Below, piece after piece: positions 444 to 42,927 of a stretch of DNA of 64,000 bases. The notes beneath the pieces were generated by a model. That model was not told the DNA's origin, searched no databases, and saw only the letters and a program-made list of their open reading frames with translations. Numbering within the stretch: the stretch's first letter is position 1; the number at the start of each line of letters is the position of its first letter. Where the stretch lies: sequence record MT612989.1. One strand, written 5' to 3'. The translations under genes were made by a program, and so were the position numbers.

Positions 444-488
444 ATACATGATAAATAAATGATAAAACGTACTCAATGAGAGAATAAC

Positions 489-3400
489 ATGGCAGAACTA
501 AGATCAACTACCGCAATTGGTGGTAACATAGTTTGGCACGGAGGGAATCTTCGCTTTGACCCGCAAGGCGAGACAATTCGCTACCAAGGCCACAAAATTT
601 ATACAGAACATGATACACCACTACCAGGCGAATTAGGTAACGGTGGGACGACTTCTGCATTCACGAAAGCTGAATCTGATGGTCGTTTTGCTCCGATTGT
701 TGCTGGCGGCTACGTGAAGAAAACCGGCGATACAATGTCAGGTAAATTGACAAACACGGCAAACGAAATTGAGATCAACGGGGCATCGCCACGTCTGTTG
801 TTGCGCGACAACGACAACTCGAAAAACTGGTACATTATGAACTCGACTGATAGTTTCAGTATTCGAGAAAATGATGTAGTCACTACTCGCTTCAGAATTG
901 ATGCTACTGCTGCCGACTTTTCTGTTGATAGTATTGATATCAACATGAAAACAGCATTGCGTGGGTTTGATGATTGGTTGAGAATCAATGATCAGAATGA
1001 GTTTACGTCTGGGGTTTATTACGGAAGCTCTCTATTACGTACAGACGGAACGTTGCAAATCGGCAACAATGGTTCAACTCTGAGTGTAAACGGCTCTGCG
1101 TTCACGTATGAAGGTAATAACGTCTTCACTGAAGCATATCACCCAAATGCGGACAAATGGACATCTGCACGCACTCTTACAACGACTCTAACGGGCGATG
1201 TAAGCGGTTCTGCGTCTATGACTATTGATGGATCGGCTAATGCGACCGTGACTGTTACAGCGACTGTAGCGAACGATTCACACACACATGACGGTAGGTA
1301 CTACACTGAAGCTGAATCTGATGCGAGATTTGCAAATGTTACAGGTGATACATTTACTGGAAACGTTGCGATCAGCAAAGCAGGTGCGCGTTTAAGCTTC
1401 AACGAGACTCTATATGCAACCGAAAACTCAGGTATTAACTGGATTACGGGTGCGAATCAGAATCTGGAATTGATTCATGAGATTAGTGATGTTGACATCA
1501 ACACTGATGGTGGTAACGGTCAAGCATTGATCATTCGTGAGAATGGTTCAACTGCATCGGTCGCAGGACTTGAAGTACAAGGTGAGATCTTCGCGAAAGT
1601 AAACCAACGTGTATTCCACGATGCTTATCACCCAAATGCTGATAAATGGACTGCTGCTCGTACAATCACACTAGGTGGTGATCTAACAGGTTCAGTATCT
1701 ATCGATGGTACTTCAAACGTTACGTTGAATGCATCTGTTCCGTCACTATCAAACTACCCGACATTTGCTGAAGTTGGTATACGCGCAGATCAGCCGAATT
1801 ACTTAGCAACTGGTCGAACAATGTCAGGTGTTGATACTACAGTTGATTGGGATACGTTGACACAAGGTGGTTTCTACTACAAGTTATCACAAGGTACAAA
1901 TAGACCAAGTGGCTTTACTGGTTACTGGTATGTTCAGAACATGACATATGGTTCAACTTCGAATACTACTCAAGTTGCATACCCTTACGGTCTAGCTGGA
2001 AATGTCGGTACAATGGCGATGCGTACTCGTTATAGTGAAGTATGGGAAGACTGGGTATACATGTACCATACAGATTACCACCCATATGCAGACAAATGGA
2101 CAACTGCACGTTCATTATCTCTTGGTAATGAATTGAGTGGTTCGGTGTCTATTGATGGTAGTTCGAATGTTACTCTAAACGCATCGGTTGATCATATCGA
2201 CAACGTATTGAACATCAATCGCGTTGGCGAATCTAACCCGTCTATTTGGTTTAACAACGACACGGGTGAAACTCGCGGTAACATCTACTGGAATCGTATT
2301 GACGGTTCATTGCAGTTTCGTTTGAATGGCTCTGATGGAACTACTGCTCAAAACATCATGTCAATGTACTCAGACCGTACAGTGTTTACAGATGCTATTC
2401 ATACAAGCACATTGTTAAATGATGCAAACACTGAGCAGGGATTGCTAATGTTCAGTGGCGGTACTACTCGCTTGGGTGGTAGTGGTGCAAGTGCTATGTA
2501 TTTCTGTCCGCTTGGTGTTAATTCAAACGCGTCGAGTGATTTTGCAGCATCGCTCAACACGTCTGGTGTAATGTCATTGAATGCATCATCATCGACGCCG
2601 CTTTCTGTACATCGAGTTGAAGAGTCTTCAGTTCCGAACGTTAATATTCGATTCCAAGGAAAGAGTACTGACGGAAATGCACTAGGTGAGGCGTGGTATG
2701 CAGGTTCGTTCACTAACGGAGCAGGGTTTGGTATTGGTACAAATGCAGACTTATCCACAGCATCGAATCGATTGTTCGAAGTTGGTGGCGCGGGAGCAGT
2801 TGTGCGCAGAGAAGGTTCTGGTGCAACGAGTCTGACAGTTCAAGGTACTGACCCGTTCTTGTTGTTTGACCAAACAGATATTGGTAAATCTGGTTACATT
2901 GGGATGGACGGCTCGGGTGTTGATTCACTTTATGTTCGTACCCCGGACGATTCTACAAGACGCAGTATTTACCATGAATCGAATAAACCAACTGCGAATG
3001 ATGTAGTCAATAACGTAATCAGTCTAACTGGTTTAGATGCTACTAAGTTCTATCCAGTTGTTTTTGATGCAAACAATACTGCTGGTTATACGTGTGAATT
3101 TACACTGTCTGTTGGTTCAGGACAAGGCAGCTCACCATATAACAACAACACGTTAACAGGTGTTGCACGTGGCGGCGGTTGGTCAGATCACAATGCATAT
3201 TATGACTTGATTATGCAGAAGTATGTTGATTCAGAAACAAACATACATTCAATATGGGAAGGGACTCAGGGATTCACGGGTGTTGTTATCTACGTTCGTG
3301 GGGGTCAGAGTATAAATCTGCGTAGTAACTCTCGCGCTCAAGTGTATACTTCAGACTACTCATTCGGTGGGTCGGTGTTCCCTGCGGGAATCTCAAACCC

Positions 3401-4502
3401 ATTGGGGGCTCCAACTAATGCTAATATGCTTGCATACTTCGATAGATCAGGACGATACACATCGTGGGCTGCGACGAATTTCAAACTAGATGGTGGTAAG
3501 TATAACATCTACACAGGTACGAATGATGCTGAATTGACATTAGATACCGACGCTAACGTTAATTCGATCTTTCGTATGACTGAAGATGCTGGGCATCATG
3601 GCGGTTATATTCAATATGAAGGCGGTGCAAACGAGTTTCGTTTAGGTACTCGTCAGTCAGATGTTGACACTATTGCATTACGTGTATATCGCGGTTCTGC
3701 AAGTGTACATATCGGAAATGAGCTACTTTCCAAGGCTGTGGATATTGCGTTAGGTGGTCGTATTAAGTTCAATGGTAAACATGCGATTAGAGCTTATGAT
3801 GCTCAGTGGCTGAGAATAAATGACGAAAGTGCATTTACTTCTGGAATTTATTGTGGTAATTCATTGCTACGCACAGACGGTCAAATCACTTCAGGTTCTT
3901 GGTCTGGTTCAAATAAATCAGCTAGAGTTGCATCTAACTTTTACGATTCGACGTGGGCAGGTAACGGAACTGCTGCATTTAGCGTAAACAACCCAGATAC
4001 TGTGGGTGCTCACTGGGCATTTGCTTCTTATTACAACGGTAGTAATATTCGCTCGGGTATTCAGATTCTATCGAACTCTGATGGTCGTATGCGATTCTAT
4101 ACTAACCGTCGTGCGAATTACGTTGAAGTGAGTAGTGGTAGCTTGACTGCTCAGGGTAACGTTACAGCTTACTCAGATGCACGTTTGAAAGAGAATGTCA
4201 AGGTTATTGACAATGCACTCAATAAAGTAGGTGAATTAAGCGGGTATACATATGATAAGCGCAAATCATTAGACTCAGATGAGTTTACTCGTGAAACTGG
4301 TGTAATCGCGCAAGAAGTGCAAAAAGTGCTGCCAGAAGCTGTGATGGAAAGTGACGAAGATCATATTCTATCAGTAGCGTATGGTAACATGAACGGTCTT
4401 TTGATTGAAGCTATTAAAGAGCTTAATGAGAAAGTCGATTCACTTCAGAACGAAGTACAAGAACTTAAACGCCCATGGTGGAAGAAGTTGCTTCGTTTAT
4501 AA
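489..4502 (+). CDS. Long tail fibre distal subunit (gp37-like) with C-terminal S74 chaperone domain
   Basis: 1337 aa, G/S/T/N-rich; internal fibre repeats (YHP.ADKWT.AR...G..GS.SIDG..NVTL x3; WLRIND..FTSG.Y.G.SLLRTDG x2); C-terminal AYSDARLKENV...TGVIAQEVQKVLPEAV S74 motif. Confidence 0.9.
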   Translation: MAELRSTTAIGGNIVWHGGNLRFDPQGETIRYQGHKIYTEHDTPLPGELGNGGTTSAFTKAESDGRFAPIVAGGYVKKTGDTMSGKLTNTANEIEINGASPRLLLRDNDNSKNWYIMNSTDSFSIRENDVVTTRFRIDATAADFSVDSIDINMKTALRGFDDWLRINDQNEFTSGVYYGSSLLRTDGTLQIGNNGSTLSVNGSAFTYEGNNVFTEAYHPNADKWTSARTLTTTLTGDVSGSASMTIDGSANATVTVTATVANDSHTHDGRYYTEAESDARFANVTGDTFTGNVAISKAGARLSFNETLYATENSGINWITGANQNLELIHEISDVDINTDGGNGQALIIRENGSTASVAGLEVQGEIFAKVNQRVFHDAYHPNADKWTAARTITLGGDLTGSVSIDGTSNVTLNASVPSLSNYPTFAEVGIRADQPNYLATGRTMSGVDTTVDWDTLTQGGFYYKLSQGTNRPSGFTGYWYVQNMTYGSTSNTTQVAYPYGLAGNVGTMAMRTRYSEVWEDWVYMYHTDYHPYADKWTTARSLSLGNELSGSVSIDGSSNVTLNASVDHIDNVLNINRVGESNPSIWFNNDTGETRGNIYWNRIDGSLQFRLNGSDGTTAQNIMSMYSDRTVFTDAIHTSTLLNDANTEQGLLMFSGGTTRLGGSGASAMYFCPLGVNSNASSDFAASLNTSGVMSLNASSSTPLSVHRVEESSVPNVNIRFQGKSTDGNALGEAWYAGSFTNGAGFGIGTNADLSTASNRLFEVGGAGAVVRREGSGATSLTVQGTDPFLLFDQTDIGKSGYIGMDGSGVDSLYVRTPDDSTRRSIYHESNKPTANDVVNNVISLTGLDATKFYPVVFDANNTAGYTCEFTLSVGSGQGSSPYNNNTLTGVARGGGWSDHNAYYDLIMQKYVDSETNIHSIWEGTQGFTGVVIYVRGGQSINLRSNSRAQVYTSDYSFGGSVFPAGISNPLGAPTNANMLAYFDRSGRYTSWAATNFKLDGGKYNIYTGTNDAELTLDTDANVNSIFRMTEDAGHHGGYIQYEGGANEFRLGTRQSDVDTIALRVYRGSASVHIGNELLSKAVDIALGGRIKFNGKHAIRAYDAQWLRINDESAFTSGIYCGNSLLRTDGQITSGSWSGSNKSARVASNFYDSTWAGNGTAAFSVNNPDTVGAHWAFASYYNGSNIRSGIQILSNSDGRMRFYTNRRANYVEVSSGSLTAQGNVTAYSDARLKENVKVIDNALNKVGELSGYTYDKRKSLDSDEFTRETGVIAQEVQKVLPEAVMESDEDHILSVAYGNMNGLLIEAIKELNEKVDSLQNEVQELKRPWWKKLLRL

Positions 4503-4505
4503 ATA
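4498..4505 (+). promoter_or_regulatory. T4-type late promoter TATAAATA
   Basis: Exact gp55 consensus overlapping the tail-fibre stop codon, 46 nt upstream of the next ATG. Confidence 0.8.
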
Positions 4506-4551: not shown

Positions 4552-5127
4552 ATGAGCAAGATAGCACAAGTGTTATTAGCTATTATCGGTACTATTCTTA
4601 TACCTCTGGCTATCACCTCAATGAGCGTGGCGACAAACTACGGCGGAATGCAGGAAGCATTACAAGTTGTACAAGAACAAGGAAAAACCGCTGTAGCTCA
4701 AAACGCGATGATCATGCAAGAAATAACTGACATCAAACTAACAAACGCGACACAAGCGCAACAGTTGATTAGCTTAGAAGGGTCACAAGCCCTTTTGGTT
4801 AAGAAACAAGATGAAGTGCTTGTGAACTATGGTAGGCTTGAGAGCGAAGTAAGAGCATTAAGGAATACGTCTGAATTGGGCGACAAAAATCTAGTGAATT
4901 CAGTTAACAGTTTAAAAAACTCACAAACTGATATTTTATCTAAGATAGAAGGTACCCATTCACGTTATTCCAAGATTGAGACTGATTTAGCCAGAGTCGA
5001 GACATTAATAAACATTGATTCGTCTGACCGCTTTACTGGTAAAGACGGTGATATGCTTAACACTCGTATTGATAATCTTGAAACTAAAGTTGACGAGATT
5101 GACAAACGAACTAAGAAAGTACAGTGA
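4552..5127 (+). CDS. Late membrane-anchored coiled-coil protein; positional candidate for holin (T-like)
   Basis: Single N-terminal hydrophobic segment plus long heptad region; lies between the distal tail fibre and the convergent asiA block, where T4 has gene t. No sequence-level match to T recognised. Confidence 0.4.
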   Translation: MSKIAQVLLAIIGTILIPLAITSMSVATNYGGMQEALQVVQEQGKTAVAQNAMIMQEITDIKLTNATQAQQLISLEGSQALLVKKQDEVLVNYGRLESEVRALRNTSELGDKNLVNSVNSLKNSQTDILSKIEGTHSRYSKIETDLARVETLINIDSSDRFTGKDGDMLNTRIDNLETKVDEIDKRTKKVQ

Positions 5128-7811: not shown

Positions 7812-8297
7812 CTAAAGTTGGCGGCGAATGACTTCGCTGTGACTAATCACACCTTCTTTCGGTGACCAACAATATACATCTGTGCCGTTTCGAACGTCGA
7901 TGTGAACCCACGTCATCGCATTACCACTCTTCAACGGTCCACATTCAATGAATTTCACGTATGGGAATTCATCTGGGTTCTCTAAGATGTATTTACGCAC
8001 TTCATGAGCAGCAATATCTCTGAATTTACAATCAGCCGCACGACCGTATTTGTGCTGAGAACGACTAGCAAGATATTTTTGAGCGGAACCATAGAAGTTC
8101 TCGTCTCTCATACCGCTGTCATCAAACGAACCGCCCCAACTCCAATCGTTTATGGTGCAGGGACCGAATCGTTCTCTGAGAGCGTCTAGCGTGCGTAATA
8201 GACGGTCATCAAAAAGTGTCCAACATTTTTCACCCCAATTTCTATACATTTGAGGTGTCACGAGTTCTTGAATTTTAAAGTGTTTACATTTATACAT
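7812..8297 (-). CDS. Peptidase M15 (LAS metallopeptidase) endolysin
   Basis: FKIQEL, LDALRERFG, SQHKYGRAAD and WVHID zinc-ligand motifs. Confidence 0.85.
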   Translation of the reverse strand: MYKCKHFKIQELVTPQMYRNWGEKCWTLFDDRLLRTLDALRERFGPCTINDWSWGGSFDDSGMRDENFYGSAQKYLASRSQHKYGRAADCKFRDIAAHEVRKYILENPDEFPYVKFIECGPLKSGNAMTWVHIDVRNGTDVYCWSPKEGVISHSEVIRRQL

Positions 8298-8314
8298 GAT
8301 TCAGTCCTAAAAAA

Positions 8315-8332
8315 GGGAGCGTTATTGCTCCC
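8315..8332 (-). terminator. Intrinsic terminator
   Basis: GGGAGC-loop-GCTCCC with T6 on the minus strand. Confidence 0.75.
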
Positions 8333-8338
8333 TAGTAT

Positions 8339-9448
8339 TTAGTAGTCGTCATCTTCGTCTTCGAATTCATCTGCGAGGTCATCCCACAGTTCTTCAAAGT
8401 GAGCAATGAATTTCTCTGGCTTGTACTGGTCCCAGTAATCGAACGAACGATGGTTTACCGTTTCAGTGCGCATTTCTGCCATATCAAATTCGCCGTCCAT
8501 TTCCCAATACATTTCTGGCATTGATTCTTCAATTACGTCACCGTCAGCGTAGATGAAATTGAAATGACTTGCAGGAATTCGACCTTTGTACCCGAATACA
8601 CCTATGCGAGTACTCAACCCACCCAGACGTTTGCCGAATCGACTTTCAATATCATCTTTGTGATACTTCGTCCCGTCTCCGCGTTGATGTGGTAATTGAT
8701 AGAATATGTCAGCATAACCGAGTTCGCTTGCTTCTTCTGAATTTGCACCTAGTACATCAATTACAACGTCATAATCAGACACAAGCTTGCTTTCGTCTGG
8801 TATACGAATCTCGATTATCACAGGGAACGAGTTGTTTCGGTTCGCTGAGTGTGTCGCATGAAACATTGCTTTATCAAGTTCAGTCGTAATGAATACTTTA
8901 TCAGCATGTTCAATATTATCAAATTGAGTTTCGCCTGGGTTCGGCTTCAGACCAAACTTCAACATTGATTCGATGTATGCTGTCGATGTGCCATGATAAA
9001 ACGTCTTTTGTGACAGTTTCTTGTTGAATTCATATCGATCTGTTTCGAAATCGTGCTCAACTTCATCGTAATCAGGGTTAAATGATTGCGTGCGACGAGT
9101 TACACCGTTTAGATTAAGTGCTTTGATCGTCTTACGAAGCGTGTCAGACGTTACAGACGGTCGGTAAGCAGAATCCCCGAACATATCTAGTCTGCCGTTC
9201 TCAATCGTCGCGTATACCGCTTGTGCGCCTTCTCTATACCAATCGTCTAGATCGTATTCTTCCTCGAAGTCAGTTCCCAACTCGCGATTGATGAATGGCA
9301 CTAGACGTTCAAACTCTCTATCGTTATTCCATACCCAAATATTCTTACCGTTAGCAAGTACTTTTGAGCCGTTTCGTGGTCGCCCGCCGCGAATAAAAAC
9401 CTCAGTGACTAACTGAAGTTCTTCCATAAAAGATTTTAGATTTTTCAT
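8339..9448 (-). CDS. NAD-dependent ADP-ribosyltransferase-like protein, possibly an internal head protein
   Basis: FYHGTS..IESMLKFGLKP...VFITT...A..HA...VIIEI resembles the Tpt1/Arr/H-Y-E ART fold; N-terminus MKNLKSFMEE..LVTE resembles the T4 capsid-targeting/gp21 cleavage leader; start chosen from a GAGGT SD. Confidence 0.6.
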   Translation of the reverse strand: MKNLKSFMEELQLVTEVFIRGGRPRNGSKVLANGKNIWVWNNDREFERLVPFINRELGTDFEEEYDLDDWYREGAQAVYATIENGRLDMFGDSAYRPSVTSDTLRKTIKALNLNGVTRRTQSFNPDYDEVEHDFETDRYEFNKKLSQKTFYHGTSTAYIESMLKFGLKPNPGETQFDNIEHADKVFITTELDKAMFHATHSANRNNSFPVIIEIRIPDESKLVSDYDVVIDVLGANSEEASELGYADIFYQLPHQRGDGTKYHKDDIESRFGKRLGGLSTRIGVFGYKGRIPASHFNFIYADGDVIEESMPEMYWEMDGEFDMAEMRTETVNHRSFDYWDQYKPEKFIAHFEELWDDLADEFEDEDDDY

Positions 9449-9468
9449 ACAATACCTCATTTTACTTG

Positions 9469-9476
9469 TATTTATG
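9469..9476 (-). promoter_or_regulatory. Late promoter variant CATAAATA
   Basis: 7/8 match to TATAAATA, just after a terminator and about 20 nt upstream of the ART-like gene. Confidence 0.6.
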
Positions 9477-9484
9477 TCAGACAC

Positions 9485-9509
9485 AAAAAAGCCCCAATTA
9501 AGGGGCTTT
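9485..9509 (-). terminator. Repeated terminator AAGCCCC-TTAATT-GGGGCTTTTTT (copy 1 of 4)
   Basis: Same hairpin at 20554-20580, 30885-30910 (one loop change) and 51726-51751. Confidence 0.85.
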
Positions 9510-9525
9510 ATGAAACTGTCATCGT

Positions 9526-9798
9526 TTACGAGGTGAATTCTTCAACTCGCTTCGCAACTCGTTCGGCGCGTTCTTTAGACTGTGCATGTACGTTGTTCTG
9601 TGCTGCAAGCTCTTGTGCGCGGCGCTCAACTTCTTCACGGGCACGACGCTCTTCCGCTTCGTTTGCTTCAATCTGTTCTTGATCGAACTGAGCACGTGCG
9701 CGAAGCTCATTTGCTTTTTGATTCATGTCGTCAAGAATGTCTTCAGTTGGACGTGGAGTATTTGTAAAGATTGCTACTAGTTTTTGAAAGAATGTCAT
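9526..9798 (-). CDS. Hypothetical coiled-coil protein
   Basis: Charged helical E/R/A-rich ORF; probable start MTFFQK. Confidence 0.65.
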   Translation of the reverse strand: MTFFQKLVAIFTNTPRPTEDILDDMNQKANELRARAQFDQEQIEANEAEERRAREEVERRAQELAAQNNVHAQSKERAERVAKRVEEFTS

Positions 9799-23368: not shown

Positions 23369-24862
23369 TTACGCTGTTCGAATCTTCTTGGCGATTTTCC
23401 ATTCACCTTCGTTGATAAAATCAGCTTGCACGTCAGACAGTTTACGAGCTTCTTCAAGTGAGAAGTCAGCAACTGTTACACCGTTTTCGAAGATTGTCTG
23501 CATCACGCTCTGAGGGTGTACGCGATTGTCGTAATCTTCAGTAGAGAACGTCACGTAACCACGAGCTGCTGGGTTCGGATTTTCTGCATCGACTGCAATC
23601 AAATCTAAGAAACCTGCTTTTGATGCTTTTGTTGGGTCAGTCTTCGGCATTTTGAACACACTAACGTATTCGCCGTTGATGATCGCCGCTGACATTTTCA
23701 TTGCAAAACGTTGAGTATCACGGTCAAGTTGCTGAAGCAAACCACCACCCATACCGAATGCAATGTTTTCTGCCGACCAACCTTTACTTTCCATGTAAGA
23801 TAGAATTCGACGAATTTCTTCGATGTTCACGCCGTCGCCTTGAATGATACGGTAACTAGGGTGTAGAACTTTGTAACCCTTGCTGTTGATTGTGTAACCA
23901 ACGTTCTTAGCAAGAATTTCAAGACCTTTCATTACTACATCTACAGGTACACCAGAGTCAGGACGAGCAACAAACGTACCGCCTTTACTGATGATTAACT
24001 CTTTGAAACGACCAGTCGAGACACGATTCATTGCTGCTTCGTAGTCGTAGCTGTCCATTACACAAGCGTATAGAGCTGCGCCCCATTGCTCGATAGAGTT
24101 CAAGAATGCTTGATCTTCGCCAAATTCTTTGTAGATTGTAGTTGTTGAGTGTTCACGTGCAGGGATAGAGAATCCCGCAATGAAGTCTTCAACATCTTCA
24201 GCGTAAAGCTCTTCAACTGCAACAAGTGCTTCTACATTGTCAGTTCCCAAGAAGTTTTTCAAGTGAGCTGCGCCGCCAATAGCTGCTGATTCGCCACTTG
24301 ACACACCACGAGAACCGAAGTCGTGAAGTTTAAACGGCTCTTGTTCTGCAATGCGTTCATCATCAACCGTTTTCTTCATGAATTCACGAATGATTTTCTT
24401 CACTTCGAACGAGATCGTTGCTACAGTTGTCGGGTACCAAATCGCACGTAAGATAAACGTTTCAAGATAACCAGGTAGCCAACCGAAACGTGGATCTGTG
24501 TTCTCAATCGTCAAGATAGGGTGCTTAACTGGTACTACAGTACCTTCTTTTACCGCACGAATCTTAATAGGCAGTTTGCCGTTCAGTTCGTTAACGATGA
24601 TTTCCCAACCCTTGTCATTGAAGACTTCAGAACCGAAGTGCTTTTTGAACAGACGTTTCGCACGCTTGACATCGTTCATTGCAACACCTTTTTCGAGAAT
24701 ACGACACATGTATGCCATACCATCGATCATAATTTTGTCGAACTTGCCGCCCCGGCTTTCAACGTAATATTGACTGTACTCTAAACCACGAGGGAATTGA
24801 GACCAGTGTGAAACTTTGTAGCTGTCTGTTGCGATTGCGATATTTTGATTAAGATTAAGCAT
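23369..24862 (-). CDS. nadV: Nicotinamide phosphoribosyltransferase (Nampt)
   Basis: TDSYKVSHW.Q.P, LHDFGSRG, SIPAREHST, DSYD, RPDSG, IIQGDG, FGMGGGLLQ...RDT..FAMK. Confidence 0.95.
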   Translation of the reverse strand: MLNLNQNIAIATDSYKVSHWSQFPRGLEYSQYYVESRGGKFDKIMIDGMAYMCRILEKGVAMNDVKRAKRLFKKHFGSEVFNDKGWEIIVNELNGKLPIKIRAVKEGTVVPVKHPILTIENTDPRFGWLPGYLETFILRAIWYPTTVATISFEVKKIIREFMKKTVDDERIAEQEPFKLHDFGSRGVSSGESAAIGGAAHLKNFLGTDNVEALVAVEELYAEDVEDFIAGFSIPAREHSTTTIYKEFGEDQAFLNSIEQWGAALYACVMDSYDYEAAMNRVSTGRFKELIISKGGTFVARPDSGVPVDVVMKGLEILAKNVGYTINSKGYKVLHPSYRIIQGDGVNIEEIRRILSYMESKGWSAENIAFGMGGGLLQQLDRDTQRFAMKMSAAIINGEYVSVFKMPKTDPTKASKAGFLDLIAVDAENPNPAARGYVTFSTEDYDNRVHPQSVMQTIFENGVTVADFSLEEARKLSDVQADFINEGEWKIAKKIRTA

Positions 24863-25486: not shown

Positions 25487-26020
25487 TTAATAATATTCGA
25501 TGTTAATTTTAGCCGAAGACCCTACCGCAGTCGATAAGAAACTCTTCCATTGTGATTCATTGTTAGATGTCAACTCGTAAAAACGCTTTGACGGCGAGCG
25601 ATGACTGAATATAAACACAGTACCACTTTCAGTTGTAACTCGTAGTGTTGATTGTGTCAGATCAGAAGACAATGCAATGAACGATTCAGTCGATATTTGG
25701 TCTTCGCTATATGCTATGTCAGTTACACTTCTACCACCAATAGTAGTAGGAGTCAACGAACCTGCGTTTTCGAAGTTCGGACTATTTTTCGCATAACCCC
25801 AACCAGAAGAACGAGGTTCACCAAAACGATATAACAACCCTCGAACTATAGTATGCGAGAATGCAGATTTACCTCTAAGATCTCCCATTGATATCGACCC
25901 GCTAGGTCTCTCTGCTAGGTCGCGCACATCTGCATCACCTAGCGAGATAGCCCCGCTAGGTCTGTCCAACTCGATTCGAACATCATTAAGTGATATTGGA
26001 CCAGTTGATGGTAATCCCAT
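25487..26020 (-). CDS. Late-expressed putative tail-tip/adhesin protein
   Basis: N-terminal LPSTGPISLNDVRIEL...SGAISLGD..VR.LA..PSG.ISMGDL.GKS motif of phage fibre-tip/gp38-type proteins; perfect late promoter upstream. Confidence 0.5.
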   Translation of the reverse strand: MGLPSTGPISLNDVRIELDRPSGAISLGDADVRDLAERPSGSISMGDLRGKSAFSHTIVRGLLYRFGEPRSSGWGYAKNSPNFENAGSLTPTTIGGRSVTDIAYSEDQISTESFIALSSDLTQSTLRVTTESGTVFIFSHRSPSKRFYELTSNNESQWKSFLSTAVGSSAKINIEYY

Positions 26021-26047: not shown

Positions 26048-26055
26048 TATTTATA
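26048..26055 (-). promoter_or_regulatory. T4-type late promoter TATAAATA
   Basis: Exact consensus (TATTTATA on +), 27 nt upstream of ATG 26020. Confidence 0.8.
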
Positions 26056-38418: not shown

Positions 38419-40324
38419 AGAAGTATGATGGTTCATAGAAAACCCACATGTATGCAATGAATACCATTAATGACATAAAGAACAAAAACAAACATACAGC
38501 TATTCCGATTTCTGAATCGTCTGTTTCTGGTATCCACTCCATTGCTCCCGCTGTGAATAGAAGAAGAAACGCTTCTATCACAGTGAACAAGATCGGTGAC
38601 TTGATGATCGTGAAGTGAATCGCATCTAACATCACTCACCTCTTGTTGGTGCGAGATCTGGTAAATGGCTCATTACAGTTTCTTTTGACCATACCATACC
38701 ATATGCCTCGACATAATCCCACTCAACACCTTTCTTCATAGTGCCGTTTAGAATCGCGCTGTGTTCGATGTCGTCTGCAAGATCAGCCAAGAAGTGTTCT
38801 TCATGGAAGACCCAACCACAGTTGCAGAAAATATAACCTAAATGTTCTCGCTCGCCGTCTTCATGAACAGCGAAGAAATGTGCAGTACTAGGTGCGCTCA
38901 TATTAGCCTCCCATAGGCGTATAGAATAAGGCAACAAACGTCATGATGCCGTGAATAAATGATGAAAAGAATAACACAACGCAATTTCTAAACGTAATTG
39001 CGTGCATTATCACGAGTGTTAGAGCAACAATGAAACACATTGTGATGATTTCATTGTCGTTCATTAGATGGAAGATTAAATCTGGTACTTGGTTCATGTG
39101 ATACTCCTTTTTTAAGAGTATACACGAATCAAAACACTACATCAAGTATCTTCTTTCAAGTTTTTCACGTACTACATCAAAAACATTCATCATCGTTTCG
39201 AGGTGATAACGATCACGGGTCATAAAGCGACCTTCACTGTAGCGACTTTTCACAAGAGCAGCTTCGATATTTTCGATATCTTCATCACAATACTCAACCC
39301 ACCATAGTGCTTTGACTTTGTATTCGTCATCTACAAGATGGTGTGGGTAGTACAAATATAACTTCGATACATCACCATCGTAAATACGATCAGCTTCTTC
39401 TTGACGTAATCGTTCCATGATTTGATGGCGTTCACGATCAATGATAGCGTTTCTTAACGTCTGAGCAACCGCCATTGTATGACACTGAGCTAACCGATAA
39501 CGCTGTTCTTCGGTTAGCATCTTGCAATCACGCCAATAAGGTTCGACTTTATCAAATACGAAATGCAAATTCGTCATTTGCTCGTCAGTGCAGTGCTCGA
39601 AGTTCTCACGTAAGTCGAACTTTCGATATGTCATGCCCACGCCCCTCGAATCTTGTAAATGGTACCCGTGTTCGGGATTTCTGCATAATGGTCAACGTCG
39701 TACAAGTATAGTGCAGTTGCACCTTCTTGAATCGCGCCGTCCGCTAGTTCTTCAAGTACTTTCTCAAGCCACAAATTCGGTTTGCTCAAGAAGCTTCGCA
39801 TTTCCAATACTTGCTTTTCGACATCTTCTTGAACAGTGCCATTTAGTGGAGCTTTAGTTTGCGCATCGATCATGATGCACGGTGAGCCAACTAGATAAAC
39901 TGGTAACCCTTTAACAACCATCGCCAATCCAACCTTTTGTTTTTAGTTGCTCGTAACCGTTTAGCATGACTTGACAATCAACGCTGTTACGGTCGAGATC
40001 GTGAATGAATGCAAGCTGCAATGCTTTGTCTAATGCTTGCGGTAGTGCGTTATCAAAGACAACTGCTACAACGTCAGTATCTGGAAAACGCTTCGTGAAT
40101 TCACCTGTTGTCTTGAAAACGGCGTTTACAGCGTCTTTCACTTCGTCCCATGTGCTATCGTCGATAACACCAAGGCAATTATCTGCATCAACCAAGAACG
40201 TGGTATTTGCTTTGTAGTACTTGCCGTTGAATTTGATTTCACCTTCTTGTGGGATATATTCAAGCCCGTTGTGAAATTCTTCAACTTCTTTGCCGTTGTA
40301 GCCGTTGAATATGATTTGTCTCAT
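38417..40324 (-). other. Hypothetical CDS run (38417..38635 TM, 38632..38937, 38903..39097 TM, 39137..39640, 39631..39927, 39911..40324)
   Basis: Tiled ORFs. Confidence 0.6.
39101..39145 (-). promoter_or_regulatory. Promoter TTGATG-17-TATACT with an SD-occluding hairpin
   Basis: ATACTC/GAGTAT stem (39101-39121) overlaps both the -10 and the AAGGAG SD of 38903..39097. Confidence 0.5.
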
Positions 40325-40995
40325 GAATTCACCTCAATGTATTCGTTTTTCATGCCTTCTTTATGCCAAATTGCAATTGCATACGCAGCGTTTGCCAAGA
40401 AAATGCAGTACTCAGCGGCAACTACAATTACACCTTGTGTGCTGTAGTTCACAATGCATACCACGTTAACTGCAACCCAGTACCACCATGCTTCGACTTT
40501 ACGCTGAATCATTAACATGAACGCCATGATACTTGCTACTGTCGTGAAAGCGTCTTGTACCGCAAGTTCAGCAGGAATATGTACGTAATCGGTAACGAGT
40601 AGTGAACCACTGAAGTACATAATCGGGTCGATGAAGTAAGCTAGTGCAGCAGTACCGAATAACGTCGCGACAATTGAACCAACGAATTTTCGCATTTTCA
40701 AATATCTGATCTTGACTTCGTTCTCACCTTGTTTGTTCCATTGATAGAAGCCGAAGATCGACATTGCAATGAAGAATCCCTGCAAGAGCACGTCACTGTA
40801 CAACTGAATCTGGAAGAACAGTATTGCAAACCCGATACAGTTGACAATACCGACTGTGAAGTTGTGCTTCATGTTCATTCTCGCCATGATAACACAGATT
40901 AAACCTGTAAGTGTCGCCCATAGTTCTAGACCAGACACTGCATAATCACCGATAGAAAACACAGTGTGGTTAATGTTAAACAATAAATCAAACAT
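40321..40995 (-). CDS. pnuC: Nicotinamide riboside transporter PnuC
   Basis: LE.WAT.TG..CV, QIQLYSD..LQ, G..QW, DAFTT..S, ..RK.E.W..W..VN. Confidence 0.92.
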   Translation of the reverse strand: MFDLLFNINHTVFSIGDYAVSGLELWATLTGLICVIMARMNMKHNFTVGIVNCIGFAILFFQIQLYSDVLLQGFFIAMSIFGFYQWNKQGENEVKIRYLKMRKFVGSIVATLFGTAALAYFIDPIMYFSGSLLVTDYVHIPAELAVQDAFTTVASIMAFMLMIQRKVEAWWYWVAVNVVCIVNYSTQGVIVVAAEYCIFLANAAYAIAIWHKEGMKNEYIEVNS

Positions 40996-41019: not shown

Positions 41020-41956
41020 TTAGCGACGTAGGCGATTTATTTTGCTGAAGATATCTTGCCCAAACACGAGCTGCATTATTTCTTCATACGCCCATTGCGT
41101 GTCTATTTCTCGATCTTTTAATTCATCTTCGAGGTAAGATTGAGCTAGGCTAGTAAGTCGTGCTTCTACATCTTGAACTGGTGTATTGCCAAGAACTACT
41201 TGAATACTATCACGTAGTTCTCGTTCAGCTTCGCGACGTTGCAGTTCTTCACGCAGTTCGTTCTCGCTGTAATCTGTTAAACTCATTTTTTAATAAACCC
41301 TGTAATAAATCGGACAATGAATGGGATGGCAATCATAAACCATATGACGGCGCTTTGCTCTAACAGCCACAAGCTGATTAATGTTACTATGAATCCCACA
41401 ATCAAGTCAAACATTAAGTACGCGACGACGTGATCATCATTGTGCATAAACCCATTTGTGGCCCATTCATACTTGAATTCTTGATAAGCTCTAGCCCAAT
41501 CTACGAACGGAATTTCACTGCGAAACATGTAGTTTATCAATGTCCCGCCCACAGAAAGTACAATAGGGGTGGCTAAGTTAATCAGCCACATCAGGATCAG
41601 TATTGCGCCGACCGTTTTTATTAACATTTTTTCACCTTAATAACGATGATTCGAATTAGAATCAGAATGAGTATGATAAATGCGATTACAGGAAACGCAA
41701 CGCTCAGTAACCATAACAAGCCCAATATAACAACGTCAAACACCATGAATGTAAACGCCCAGAACGCCATATCGTCTTTATCTTTAGTAATTTCATGCAT
41801 CATTTTATTGGTGAATATGTGACGATATTTGAAAAGTTGCAGCTTATCAAGATATCGATTAAACTCGATGTCCATCATAAACACACACTTCATGATTATT
41901 GTAACTAACAAAGTTGCAACAACAATAGCGATATTAGAAATCCAGATTATACCCAT
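41020..41956 (-). other. Three small CDS between nadR and pnuC (41020..41286; membrane proteins 41283..41627 and 41621..41956)
   Basis: Tiled ORFs, the two larger with multiple TM segments. Confidence 0.65.
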
Positions 41957-42927
41957 TTTACTTTATCTCTCAGTAATGAAACATGACTTGCTGTTTCGTG
42001 TAAACGTTCTTCCCAATTGTTACCTTTCTGAACAATCAAGAATGGTTTGTTCAATCGAAGAAGCATAGATTTAGCAAGTTCAAACCAACGTTCGCGATCT
42101 TCTTGTGACTGTGTACGAGTCCCGTCTTGAACAAATTCGCAGTTTGGTCGAAACAGTACGTAAGCATCAATGCTTTCAAATGCAGCTAATGCATTAAGAA
42201 GAACCGATGATTGATTGAATTGAAACTGACTGTAAACAGCCGATGTAACGGCTGAAGAATCAACGATTACAGTGTCACTTTCTTTACCAGTCGCTTCAAT
42301 TCGTGCAGTTTGTGCAATCGCGAACTCTAGTACGTCGTGTTCAGTGTAGTGATTGTCACTCATGATATCGCGTGCTGCTTCAAGTACAAGTTCATAACCG
42401 TTAGCGGCTGCGATTGATGCTGCGTTCCAAGACTTACCACAAGACTCGGGACCGATGAATGCAATTCTCTTTACACGATCTTGCTGTGCGCTCGGGCTGT
42501 AGAACTCGTGTGAATCGTTCTCGCGAACCGAAGTACTTGAGCAAGGTGTGATTTCACGCGCTTCATCGTAGATGATTCCATCGAAGTTACCGTACTCAGC
42601 ACAGTAATTGATGTATTGCTCAGAACCAACGAATGCATCAATCTCTGGGAAATGCTCGTCGATGTACTCAGCCCATTGCTTTGATACTTCGCGATCTGAT
42701 TCAGATTTATTAGATAGACCTTCATCGCTCGGGCAGATCACTTTGATGCAGATACGATTACCGAAATCTTGATGCATCCATTTCATGCGTGTTTCGACAT
42801 CAATCGGGTCAGTGTTTTCAGTGCAAAGCAAAACAGTTACTTTGTCTGCAAGCGATAGCGCGAACTTAATCAGCTTGAAATGACCTTGATGATAGTTATT
42901 AAACTTTCCAATTACACCTGCGTGCAT
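41947..42927 (-). CDS. nadR: NadR-like NMN adenylyltransferase / ribosylnicotinamide kinase (no HTH)
   Basis: GKF...HQGH nucleotidyltransferase motif, R..W, SST..R, GPESCGKS P-loop, F.QDG.R. Confidence 0.9.
   Translation of the reverse strand: MHAGVIGKFNNYHQGHFKLIKFALSLADKVTVLLCTENTDPIDVETRMKWMHQDFGNRICIKVICPSDEGLSNKSESDREVSKQWAEYIDEHFPEIDAFVGSEQYINYCAEYGNFDGIIYDEAREITPCSSTSVRENDSHEFYSPSAQQDRVKRIAFIGPESCGKSWNAASIAAANGYELVLEAARDIMSDNHYTEHDVLEFAIAQTARIEATGKESDTVIVDSSAVTSAVYSQFQFNQSSVLLNALAAFESIDAYVLFRPNCEFVQDGTRTQSQEDRERWFELAKSMLLRLNKPFLIVQKGNNWEERLHETASHVSLLRDKVKWV

Follow-up and report, generated by a model that had tools for sequence, protein, structure and literature searches.

What does a T4-type phage use a solitary, apparently late gene for a putative ADP-ribosyltransferase (ART) for, and in which cell does the product act? 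The gene in question lies in the last 64 kb of the 246.8-kb record of Vibrio phage vB_ValM_R11Z (MT612989, matched with 100% identity), a KVP40-type Schizotequatrovirus; this stretch of 64,000 nucleotides is hereafter called the window. An earlier note, made from the letters of the window alone, took the product for a virion-packaged ART of a non-Alt type that is injected at the moment of infection and presumably serves takeover or anti-defence. Our reading is that the protein is a late-made, low-copy, head-borne ART, which would enter the next host together with the DNA and ADP-ribosylate a host macromolecule. To this chain as a whole we assign a probability of about 0.5.

The gene, whose features are collected in Table 1, is real: its homologs reach E 1e-250, it is a core gene in 18 of 18 Schizotequatroviruses, and its ratio of nonsynonymous to synonymous substitution rates (dN/dS) is 0.14. 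The best choice of start is the ATG at 9448, and the open reading frame (ORF) end at 8339 includes the stop codon. In the GenBank record the start was placed at the second in-frame Met (9427, not 9448), which loses seven conserved N-terminal residues and a good ribosome-binding site; the N-terminus MKNLKSF, common to the close orthologs, favours the longer form. The span 8339-9476 given in the earlier note thus ends at 8339 with a real gene, but its other end, 9476, coincides with the outer boundary of the promoter motif and not with the start of the coding sequence. The two terminators and the late-like promoter that it described around a stand-alone gene are all present. The upstream hairpin closes the preceding early-type transcription unit, and the surrounding 4-kb region holds eight terminator-like hairpins where 3.1 were expected.

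The timing of expression can be judged from the motif ahead of the gene. T4-type late promoters have TATAAATA at -13 to -6; in KVP40, RB49 and S-PM2 the first T is poorly conserved, and Aeh1 has CTAAATA (PMC1524935; PMC2984593). The motif found here, CATAAATA, is of the NATAAATA variant, for which the full 246.8-kb record was scanned, with promoter position defined as 5-70 nt ahead of an ATG that has a ribosome-binding site. There are just 31 copies of NATAAATA in the 247 kb. Eighteen of them are in promoter position, mostly ahead of genes for gp23, gp22, gp24, tail sheath, fibritin, baseplate and tail-fibre proteins and of the Alt-like gene, while four more such copies precede genes without annotated function or a prohead-protease-inhibitor gene. 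The apparent exceptions among the 18 are regA and nrdA, which are early genes in T4. AATAAATA was seen 29 nt ahead of the nrdA start (window 18969 region, minus strand, corresponding to record position 201800) and another copy ahead of regA (record 51994); such motifs either match by chance or point to dual early/late control.

The exact motif CATAAATA stands in promoter position three times genome-wide, namely ahead of the Alt-like gene, a long-tail-fibre gene and the gene considered here. The window contains one copy where 3.5 were expected, by count alone no more than chance; since this number is uninformative, only position and genome-wide context carry weight. Given its position, its conservation in KVP40 and the adjoining terminator, the motif is not a chance occurrence. 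KVP40 has the identical promoter motif and has kept the stem and T-run of the upstream terminator, with a different and longer loop. Between the upstream terminator and the ATG there was no match to a sigma-70-type promoter, nor room for one. Six of the nine distant relatives that stand alone carry a TAAATA core in the 60 nt ahead of the gene (compared with 2.6% of random 60-nt windows from the same contigs), and in two of these six it directly follows a terminator-like hairpin, as in R11Z; late control therefore appears to be a family trait. For KVP40-type phages, a search of the literature turned up no transcriptome. The hairpins, the motif conserved in KVP40, its genome-wide bias towards virion genes and the TAAATA cores of the distant relatives all support the stand-alone late transcription unit of the earlier note, and judging from these signals the gene is very likely transcribed late, from a gp55-type promoter, with the virion genes.

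The nature of the product was approached through structural models and sequence searches; it very probably has an ART fold and uses NAD+. A first AlphaFold2 model, made from 20 sequences, had a predicted local distance difference test score (pLDDT) of 73; a second, made from 138 relatives, reached 92.4, with a predicted template-modelling score (pTM) of 0.90. With either model the 50 best Foldseek matches in the PDB were ART folds without exception (best E 4e-4), including pertussis S1, cholera A1, PltA, TreX, Tpt1/KptA and DarT, so that the structural check proposed in the earlier note came out in favour of its assignment. In BFVD the nearest neighbours after the orthologs were many ARTs of Bacillus phage G, a phage Tpt1-like protein, DarT and Arr. 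On the sequence side, the query alone matched a single Pfam family, PARP (PF00644, E 1e-4, residues 129-225). In a set of 20 relatives PARP was matched in 10, Tpt1/KptA in five and Arr in two, all below threshold. A single-sequence search of the PDB gave nothing significant, PADLOC gave no match for the protein, and neither the query nor the 20 relatives matched PF18760 (ART-PolyVal) or MuF.

Kinship with Alt was considered and rejected: when aligned by hhalign with the Alt-like protein of R11Z, the ART-fold protein reached a probability of 0.2%, and PF03496 gave no match at E <= 1. As the Alt-like protein itself matches PF03496 (24.2 bits) and shows no relationship to the ART-fold protein, the label 'non-Alt type' was correct. 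Placement on the His side of the ARTs, and not on the Alt (R-S-E) side, is likewise borne out by the model, Foldseek, the profiles, hhalign and the presence of H152.

Within the His side, the profile of the 138 relatives (representatives after clustering at 50% identity, to which all conservation counts refer) matched only Tpt1/KptA among solved structures, with a best E of 8e-4. The alignment covers the strand-helix with Y151-H152-G-T154 and G166-L-x-P169, residue for residue. Since Tpt1 is also among the fold matches and the phage encodes a polynucleotide kinase and two RNA ligases (Rnl1 and Rnl2), the protein might be a Tpt1/KptA-like RNA 2'-phosphotransferase serving this RNA-repair set. 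The match, however, spans just about 35 residues of the NAD-binding strand-helix. The sole NCBIfam match, Tpt1 NF002013, is negligible (12.4 bits against a cut-off of 231), and PF01885 reaches at best E 0.005 among the relatives, under its cut-off. Tpt1 needs an Arg-His-Arg-Arg tetrad; the family lacks such a conserved set, its only conserved Arg and Lys columns being R290 (122/138) and K106 (134/138), respectively. Moreover, Tpt1 is half as large as the R11Z protein; the isoelectric point (pI) of the latter, 4.6, is unusual for an RNA-binding enzyme, and its gene, apparently expressed late, lies far from the RNA-repair genes. An RNA-repair function is thus quite improbable.

The model divides the protein into a leader, an N-terminal alpha/beta domain, the ART core with a helical insert, and a C-terminal helical region (Table 1). 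Apart from the full-length PHROG match given below, the N-terminal domain had no family match in Pfam, PHROG and NCBIfam searches of the protein. Confidence is lower in the leader (pLDDT 81-83) than in the body (>95) and lowest in insert residues 251-280 (65-79). The insert is a possible substrate-recognition element in this model. An acidic tail, with at least seven acidic residues among the last 15, is found in 102 of the 138 relatives, and the median pI of the family is 4.8.

The motifs quoted in the earlier note are all present in the core: YHGTS (151-155), GLKP (166-169), VFIT (185-188) and IIEI (211-214). H152 and T154 are each conserved in 137 of 138 relatives, G153 in 136 and H197 in 134, while D225, D227 and Y287 are invariant (138/138); G289 follows with 137. 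Position 186 is Phe in 135 relatives and Tyr in three. It lies on the predicted second core strand, 34 residues past H152, and its presumed equivalence to the Tyr of other His-type enzymes is drawn from this spacing and from the partial PARP match. The only basic residues in columns at least 75% conserved are K106, H152, H197 and R290. The Glu of IIEI, which the earlier note had included in the catalytic core, did not hold up: no more than 66 of the 138 relatives have Glu at position 213, against all of them with Asp at 225 and 227, and on conservation E213 was rejected as the catalytic acid. By conservation, this role most likely falls to one of the two Asp residues.

That the canonical Glu is not conserved, and that the protein is acidic like scaffold-core proteins, would also fit a catalytically dead ART-fold protein acting as a structural or scaffolding component. 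Such a loss of activity is very improbable: H152, T154 and F186, whose counterparts line the NAD+ pocket of related enzymes, and the two Asp residues are invariant or nearly so across a family of about 430 clusters, a pattern typical of an active site, and the dN/dS indicates purifying selection. Alternatively, as an ADP-ribosyltransferase of the Arr kind or an NADase, the protein might modify or destroy a small metabolite or an NAD-derived immune signal and not act on a macromolecule. This reading can draw on the weak Arr-ms matches in two of the 20 relatives and one Arr match in BFVD, on relatives fused to NUDIX, and on the wealth of NAD and ADP-ribose genes in the phage; the spacing of His, aromatic residue and Asp (152, 186, 225/227) also resembles that of compact H-Y-D enzymes. 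The Arr matches are nevertheless far under the cut-off (13-14 against 25 bits), and the build of the protein, with its large N-terminal domain, 60-residue insert and acidic tail, resembles that of an enzyme recognising a macromolecule, which makes a small-molecule substrate improbable.

A HMMER scan of 1.84 billion cluster representatives (E <= 1e-3) returned 430 relatives, mostly of 320-380 amino acids (aa) and of the same build. They were found only in phages, mostly large marine myoviruses; their contigs are large and myovirus-like, with T4-type replication and baseplate genes, and some exceed 300 kb. No relative was detected in bacteria or archaea when 185,579 species, one genome each, were scanned with the most conserved eight-residue pattern, and the 247-kb R11Z genome contains no paralog. 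PHROG 11974, a family of unknown function, matches over the full length of the protein, which is annotated as 'hypothetical protein' in all 52 records from cultured phages (51 Vibrio phages and Salicola phage SCTP-2). In a large protein collection one homolog is named, that of a Vibrio phage (AUR86026.1), which was automatically named for a PARP catalytic domain. We found no paper that mentions KVP40.0290 or its accession, and no biochemistry of any family member in the literature. In uncultured large phages, giant ORFs of 1108-1868 codons join NUDIX domains to a copy of the family (P0134, P0136 and P0102), the longest being uninterrupted over 1868 codons (L013:1381-6987, plus strand). Two of the three (P0136 and P0102) also contain bona fide PARP domains. 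These are polyvalent-protein-like architectures. One further relative (contig L006) adjoins two ART-PolyVal genes and a NAPRTase gene.

Whether the protein travels with the virion can be asked of a close relative. In a 2025 Schizotequatrovirus study, 94 proteins were detected by mass spectrometry in particles of phage 6E35-1a, and according to Table S4 the ortholog VP6E351A_0357 was among them, with 18 and 4 spectral counts in the two replicates (PMC12028318). This ortholog (371 aa, PHROG 11974) corresponds to QZI87545.1 and falls in the same 90% cluster as homolog P0005. For comparison, the table lists 122 and 233 counts for the Alt-like enzyme, 165 and 280 for the portal, and 16 and 23 for nicotinamide phosphoribosyltransferase (NAMPT). 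Two other orphan products of genes with late promoters, of PHROG 13298 (84 aa) and PHROG 14513 (122 aa), are also listed in the 6E35-1a particle proteome. We lean slightly towards the ART-fold protein being a true virion component.

It should be noted that the R11Z genes for these two orphans have NATAAATA in promoter position and encode an early [L/I]-x-E site. The PHROG 14513 gene lies at record 172603..172974 on the minus strand (L026:22603-22974; 123 aa), and the leader of its product resembles that of the ART-fold protein; the PHROG 13298 gene lies at record 9294..9545, also on the minus strand (L023:9294-9545; 83 aa). The orthologs are listed with 3 and 0, and 6 and 13 counts, respectively, and both products are candidate internal head proteins. 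The neighbour of the Alt-like gene (record 67842..68723, minus strand; L024:17842-18723) encodes a 293-aa hypothetical protein with no Pfam match; a terminator followed by TATAAATA precedes it, the protein has an early L-I-E site, and its ortholog VP6E351A_0094 is listed with 16 and 61 counts in the particles.

The N-terminus may bear on packaging as well. Capsid targeting in T4 takes no more than the first 10 residues of internal protein III; cleavage by the prohead protease falls after a Glu and is also determined two residues earlier, and Alt is shortened by a propeptide of seven residues (PMC9026906). The leader of the R11Z protein ends in V14-T15-E16, immediately ahead of the strand with which the folded body begins. 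Across the family, Glu occupies position 16 in 135 of 138 relatives, and position 14 is Leu in 95, Ile in 29 and Val in seven (131/138 together), while the leader ahead of this [L/I/V]-x-E motif varies from about 3 to 35 residues. An [L/I]-x-E motif also occurs near the N-terminus of the R11Z proteins gp22, gp21, gp68-like, gp23, Alt-like and the neighbour of the last. As a stand-alone discriminator within the genome, the N-terminal [L/I]-x-E was tried and rejected, as non-processed late proteins show it by chance.

From fold, conserved residues, promoter and terminator anatomy and distribution, all obtained in silico, we infer catalysis, processing, injection and target as follows. The protein would be an ART-fold enzyme of a phage-restricted, unnamed family, with a His-type NAD+ site (H152-G-T, F186) as in Tpt1/KptA, PARP, Arr and DarT, and its substrate would probably be chosen by the helical insert of about 60 residues and the N-terminal domain. 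The gene would be transcribed on its own from the gp55-type late promoter between the two terminators, in time with the virion genes. A few copies would be taken into the prohead, where the 16-residue leader is perhaps removed after E16 by the gp21-type protease; as far as the sequence allows a judgement, we put forward this cleavage tentatively, as somewhat less than an even bet. The enzyme would then enter the next host cell together with the DNA and move ADP-ribose from NAD+ to a host macromolecule; the strong acidity of the protein makes a protein target likelier than a nucleic acid.

A more detailed version of this chain is doubtful, in our view: the R11Z protein would be the first cultured example of a large, phage-only ART family with a His / Phe / Asp-x-Asp active site in place of the classical triads, loaded via a cleavable leader and injected as a second effector independent of Alt, with a host protein as its target. 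That target would possibly be a defence component untouched by the known phage ARTs, and the carriers would be the Schizotequatroviruses and many uncultured marine jumbo myoviruses.

Several observations tell against the chain as a whole. As to the fold, the Foldseek TM-scores for the PDB matches are at most 0.53 on the target. The PARP score stays below the gathering cut-off of 26.7 bits (22.3 for the query, 25.0 for the best of ten relatives), the NCBIfam score is negligible, as given above, and no curated family threshold is reached in Pfam or NCBIfam. Matches to ARTs throughout, but with modest TM-scores, indicate a clear fold in a divergent member that has no close structural relative. 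Spacing and conservation are the only basis for assigning the second and third catalytic positions. The gene neighbourhood consists of early-type genes, and no head genes adjoin. In Vibrio phage 6E35-1b (OZ196891) the ortholog is annotated as two ORFs of 206 and 176 aa, and tblastn also finds it in two pieces; the sister phage 6E35-1a has it intact. This amounts to a single break, and the gene may be dispensable.

As to the leader, by chance alone about one protein in four should have an [L/I/V]-x-E among its first 20 residues, and the R11Z residue two before E16 is Val, not Leu or Ile. The motif is kept in three of five copies that lie inside larger fused proteins, and some relatives have only three or four residues ahead of it. 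Because it survives in fused copies and behind near-absent leaders, it may belong to the fold. The gp21-cleavage-like leader seen by the earlier note therefore stands in so far as the motif is that of the phage's known prohead-protease substrates, but its retention in fused copies suggests that it may be structural.

As to the particles, those of 6E35-1a were prepared by polyethylene glycol (PEG) precipitation only, and Table S4 lists several evident contaminants (counts in replicates 1 and 2): DNA helicase (7 and 19), dUTPase (7 and 10), spanins (12 and 10) and SSB (4 and 2) (PMC12028318). The counts of the ART-fold ortholog drop from the first replicate to the second, while those of nearly all structural proteins rise. 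Per kDa the ortholog is about 14-fold below the portal. As the portal is present in 12 copies per particle, this corresponds, if counts are linear, to about one copy of the ART-fold protein per particle. Low, falling counts in a PEG-only sample fit a low-copy packaged enzyme and carry-over equally. The packaging claimed by the earlier note is thus favoured by the detection of an ortholog in particles, but weakened by its low and inconsistent counts and by the contaminants in the preparation.

The same observations can be accommodated by a late ART, or other NAD+-consuming enzyme, that acts in the producing cell and is not a virion component, its signal in the proteome being lysate carry-over. 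Clearly cytoplasmic phage enzymes at similar counts, a trend opposite to that of the structural proteins, an estimated copy per particle or fewer, the distance from the head genes and the possibly structural motif would all be expected from such an enzyme. Against it, late promoters mark almost only virion proteins in this genome, and the very same variant drives the packaged Alt-like enzyme; the two other orphan late-promoter genes are also represented in the particle proteome; and late-promoter control has been kept in very distant relatives. Furthermore, we know of no late intracellular role for an ART in T4-type phages. On balance we consider action confined to the producing cell unlikely.

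Table 1. Features of the ART-fold gene and its product, in window coordinates
Feature	Coordinates	Strand	Remarks
ART-fold gene, coding sequence	8339..9448	-	369 aa + stop, 43 kDa, pI 4.6; ortholog of KVP40.0290 / VP6E351A_0357; PHROG 11974
Upstream intrinsic-terminator-like hairpin	9488..9509	-	8-bp stem, five G-C pairs, T-run
Late-promoter-like motif CATAAATA	9469..9476	-	20 nt ahead of ATG; T4-type gp55 promoter, NATAAATA variant
Shine-Dalgarno GAGG	9455..9458	-	6 nt ahead of ATG, read from the sequence
N-terminal leader, residues 1-16	9401..9448	-	predicted helix (4-15), ends V14-T15-E16; candidate propeptide / prohead-protease site
N-terminal alpha/beta domain, residues 17-137	9038..9400	-	secondary structure from model; conserved W38, S101, K106, L111
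ART-fold core, residues 150-301	8546..9001	-	H152-G-T154 on strand 1, F186 on strand 2, H197, D225-Y-D227, Y287 in G286..P292 block
Helical insert in ART core, residues 226-283	8600..8773	-	flanked by D225/D227 and G283..Y287
C-terminal helical region, residues 303-369	8342..8542	-	strongly acidic tail, 25 D+E vs 4 K+R
Downstream terminator-like hairpin	8314..8333	-	5 nt past stop codon

Some neighbouring genes of the window deserve mention. Downstream of the ART-fold gene lies a gene for a 161-aa protein (7812..8297, minus strand) with an endolysin PHROG match (phrog_894, E 1e-34) and no Pfam family; its ortholog is listed with 2 and 0 counts in the 6E35-1a particle proteome. There is no promoter-sized gap between the downstream hairpin and the ATG of this gene. 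A ACTAAATA motif at 8336..8343 (minus strand) overlaps the stop codon of the ART-fold gene; a start a few bases on would fall inside the first arm of the hairpin, so that late transcripts from there would escape the terminator. Elsewhere in the window, a perfect TATAAATA at 26048..26055 (minus strand) lies 27 nt ahead of a gene for a 177-aa hypothetical protein (25487..26020, minus strand; PHROG 26817). This is an isolated late gene amid an early-type block, and its PHROG number does not appear in the parts of the 6E35-1a tables available to us. Late-promoter motifs at 4498..4505 (TATAAATA) and 450..457 (GATAAATA), both on the plus strand, each precede an ORF: the first a 191-aa product with a hydrophobic N-terminus (4552..5127, plus strand), the second a 1337-aa tail-fibre gene (489..4502, plus strand).

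The NAD salvage genes to which the earlier note appealed exist both in the window and elsewhere in the genome. Those in the window encode NAMPT, a PnuC-like nicotinamide riboside transporter and a NadR-like protein (23369..24862, 40321..40995 and 41947..42927, all on the minus strand); NadM/NUDIX, NMNAT, a macro-domain protein and a sirtuin-like deacetylase are encoded elsewhere in the R11Z genome. Their link to the ART-fold gene is circumstantial.

To our knowledge, T4 Alt is the only well-studied enzyme of a phage head that is injected to ADP-ribosylate the host, and there are almost no other named cases. The gene described here offers a concrete candidate for a packaged ART: it belongs to the core genome of phages that can be cultivated, and its product is modelled with confidence. 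Metagenomes of marine phages hold hundreds of family members, while the pattern scan of about 185,000 genomes of bacteria and archaea found none, so that knowing the function of the family would put a name to a considerable share of viral dark matter. The question why these phages have NAD+ salvage, NUDIX, macro-domain and sirtuin genes of their own is touched by it as well.

Comparison with known systems places the protein between several of them. It shares with Alt (head-packaged and injected; R-S-E / VIP2-type, PF03496) the status of an ART-fold protein of T4-type phages and late-promoter control, in R11Z by the same CATAAATA variant; an [L/I/V]-x-E site lies near the N-terminus of each, and orthologs of both are listed in particle proteomes. 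It differs from Alt in having no detectable sequence relationship and in the His, not Arg, of its first strand, and its ortholog is about 16-fold scarcer in the listed particle counts than the Alt-like enzyme (mean 11 vs 177.5). With Tpt1/KptA (H-type, PF01885) it has in common the strand-helix with Y-H-G-T and G-L-x-P and the order of an N-terminal domain followed by the ART lobe, yet it is twice as long and acidic, with a 60-residue insert, an acidic tail and no Arg-His-Arg-Arg set. The PARPs (H-Y-E, PF00644) likewise have a His on strand 1 and an aromatic residue, which in the ART-fold protein follows 34 residues later; here this residue is Phe in nearly all relatives, and the match ends before the part of the model with the catalytic Glu. 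Arr (a rifampin ART) and DarT (an ART of single-stranded DNA) are both among the fold matches, and Arr among the weak Pfam matches too, but both are small single-domain enzymes and the matches are very weak. DarT is moreover paired with a macrodomain antitoxin, whereas the macro-domain gene of R11Z lies about 150 kb from the ART-fold gene.

Among phage proteins, the ARTs of Bacillus phage G are the nearest structural neighbours that are not orthologs. A relation to the polyvalent and MuF ARTs is seen in the family members that lie inside giant NUDIX/PARP ORFs or adjoin ART-PolyVal genes; the R11Z protein, in contrast, has no PF18760 or MuF match and is encoded by a stand-alone gene with its own promoter and terminators. 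A survey of viral NAD and ADP-ribose systems predicted frequent packaging and injection for the ARTs of myoviruses (Iyer et al. 2022, PMC9503650), and no name for the present family was found in its main text. Both the occurrence of ART-fold enzymes in myoviruses and the view that packaging is common among them are thus already known from this survey (PMC9503650). New are a specific and widespread family that has no curated model, with unusual invariant residues (Asp-x-Asp, and Phe for Tyr) and a distinct domain build, its conserved late-promoter control, and, from the particle tables of 6E35-1a, a first proteomic hint of virion association.

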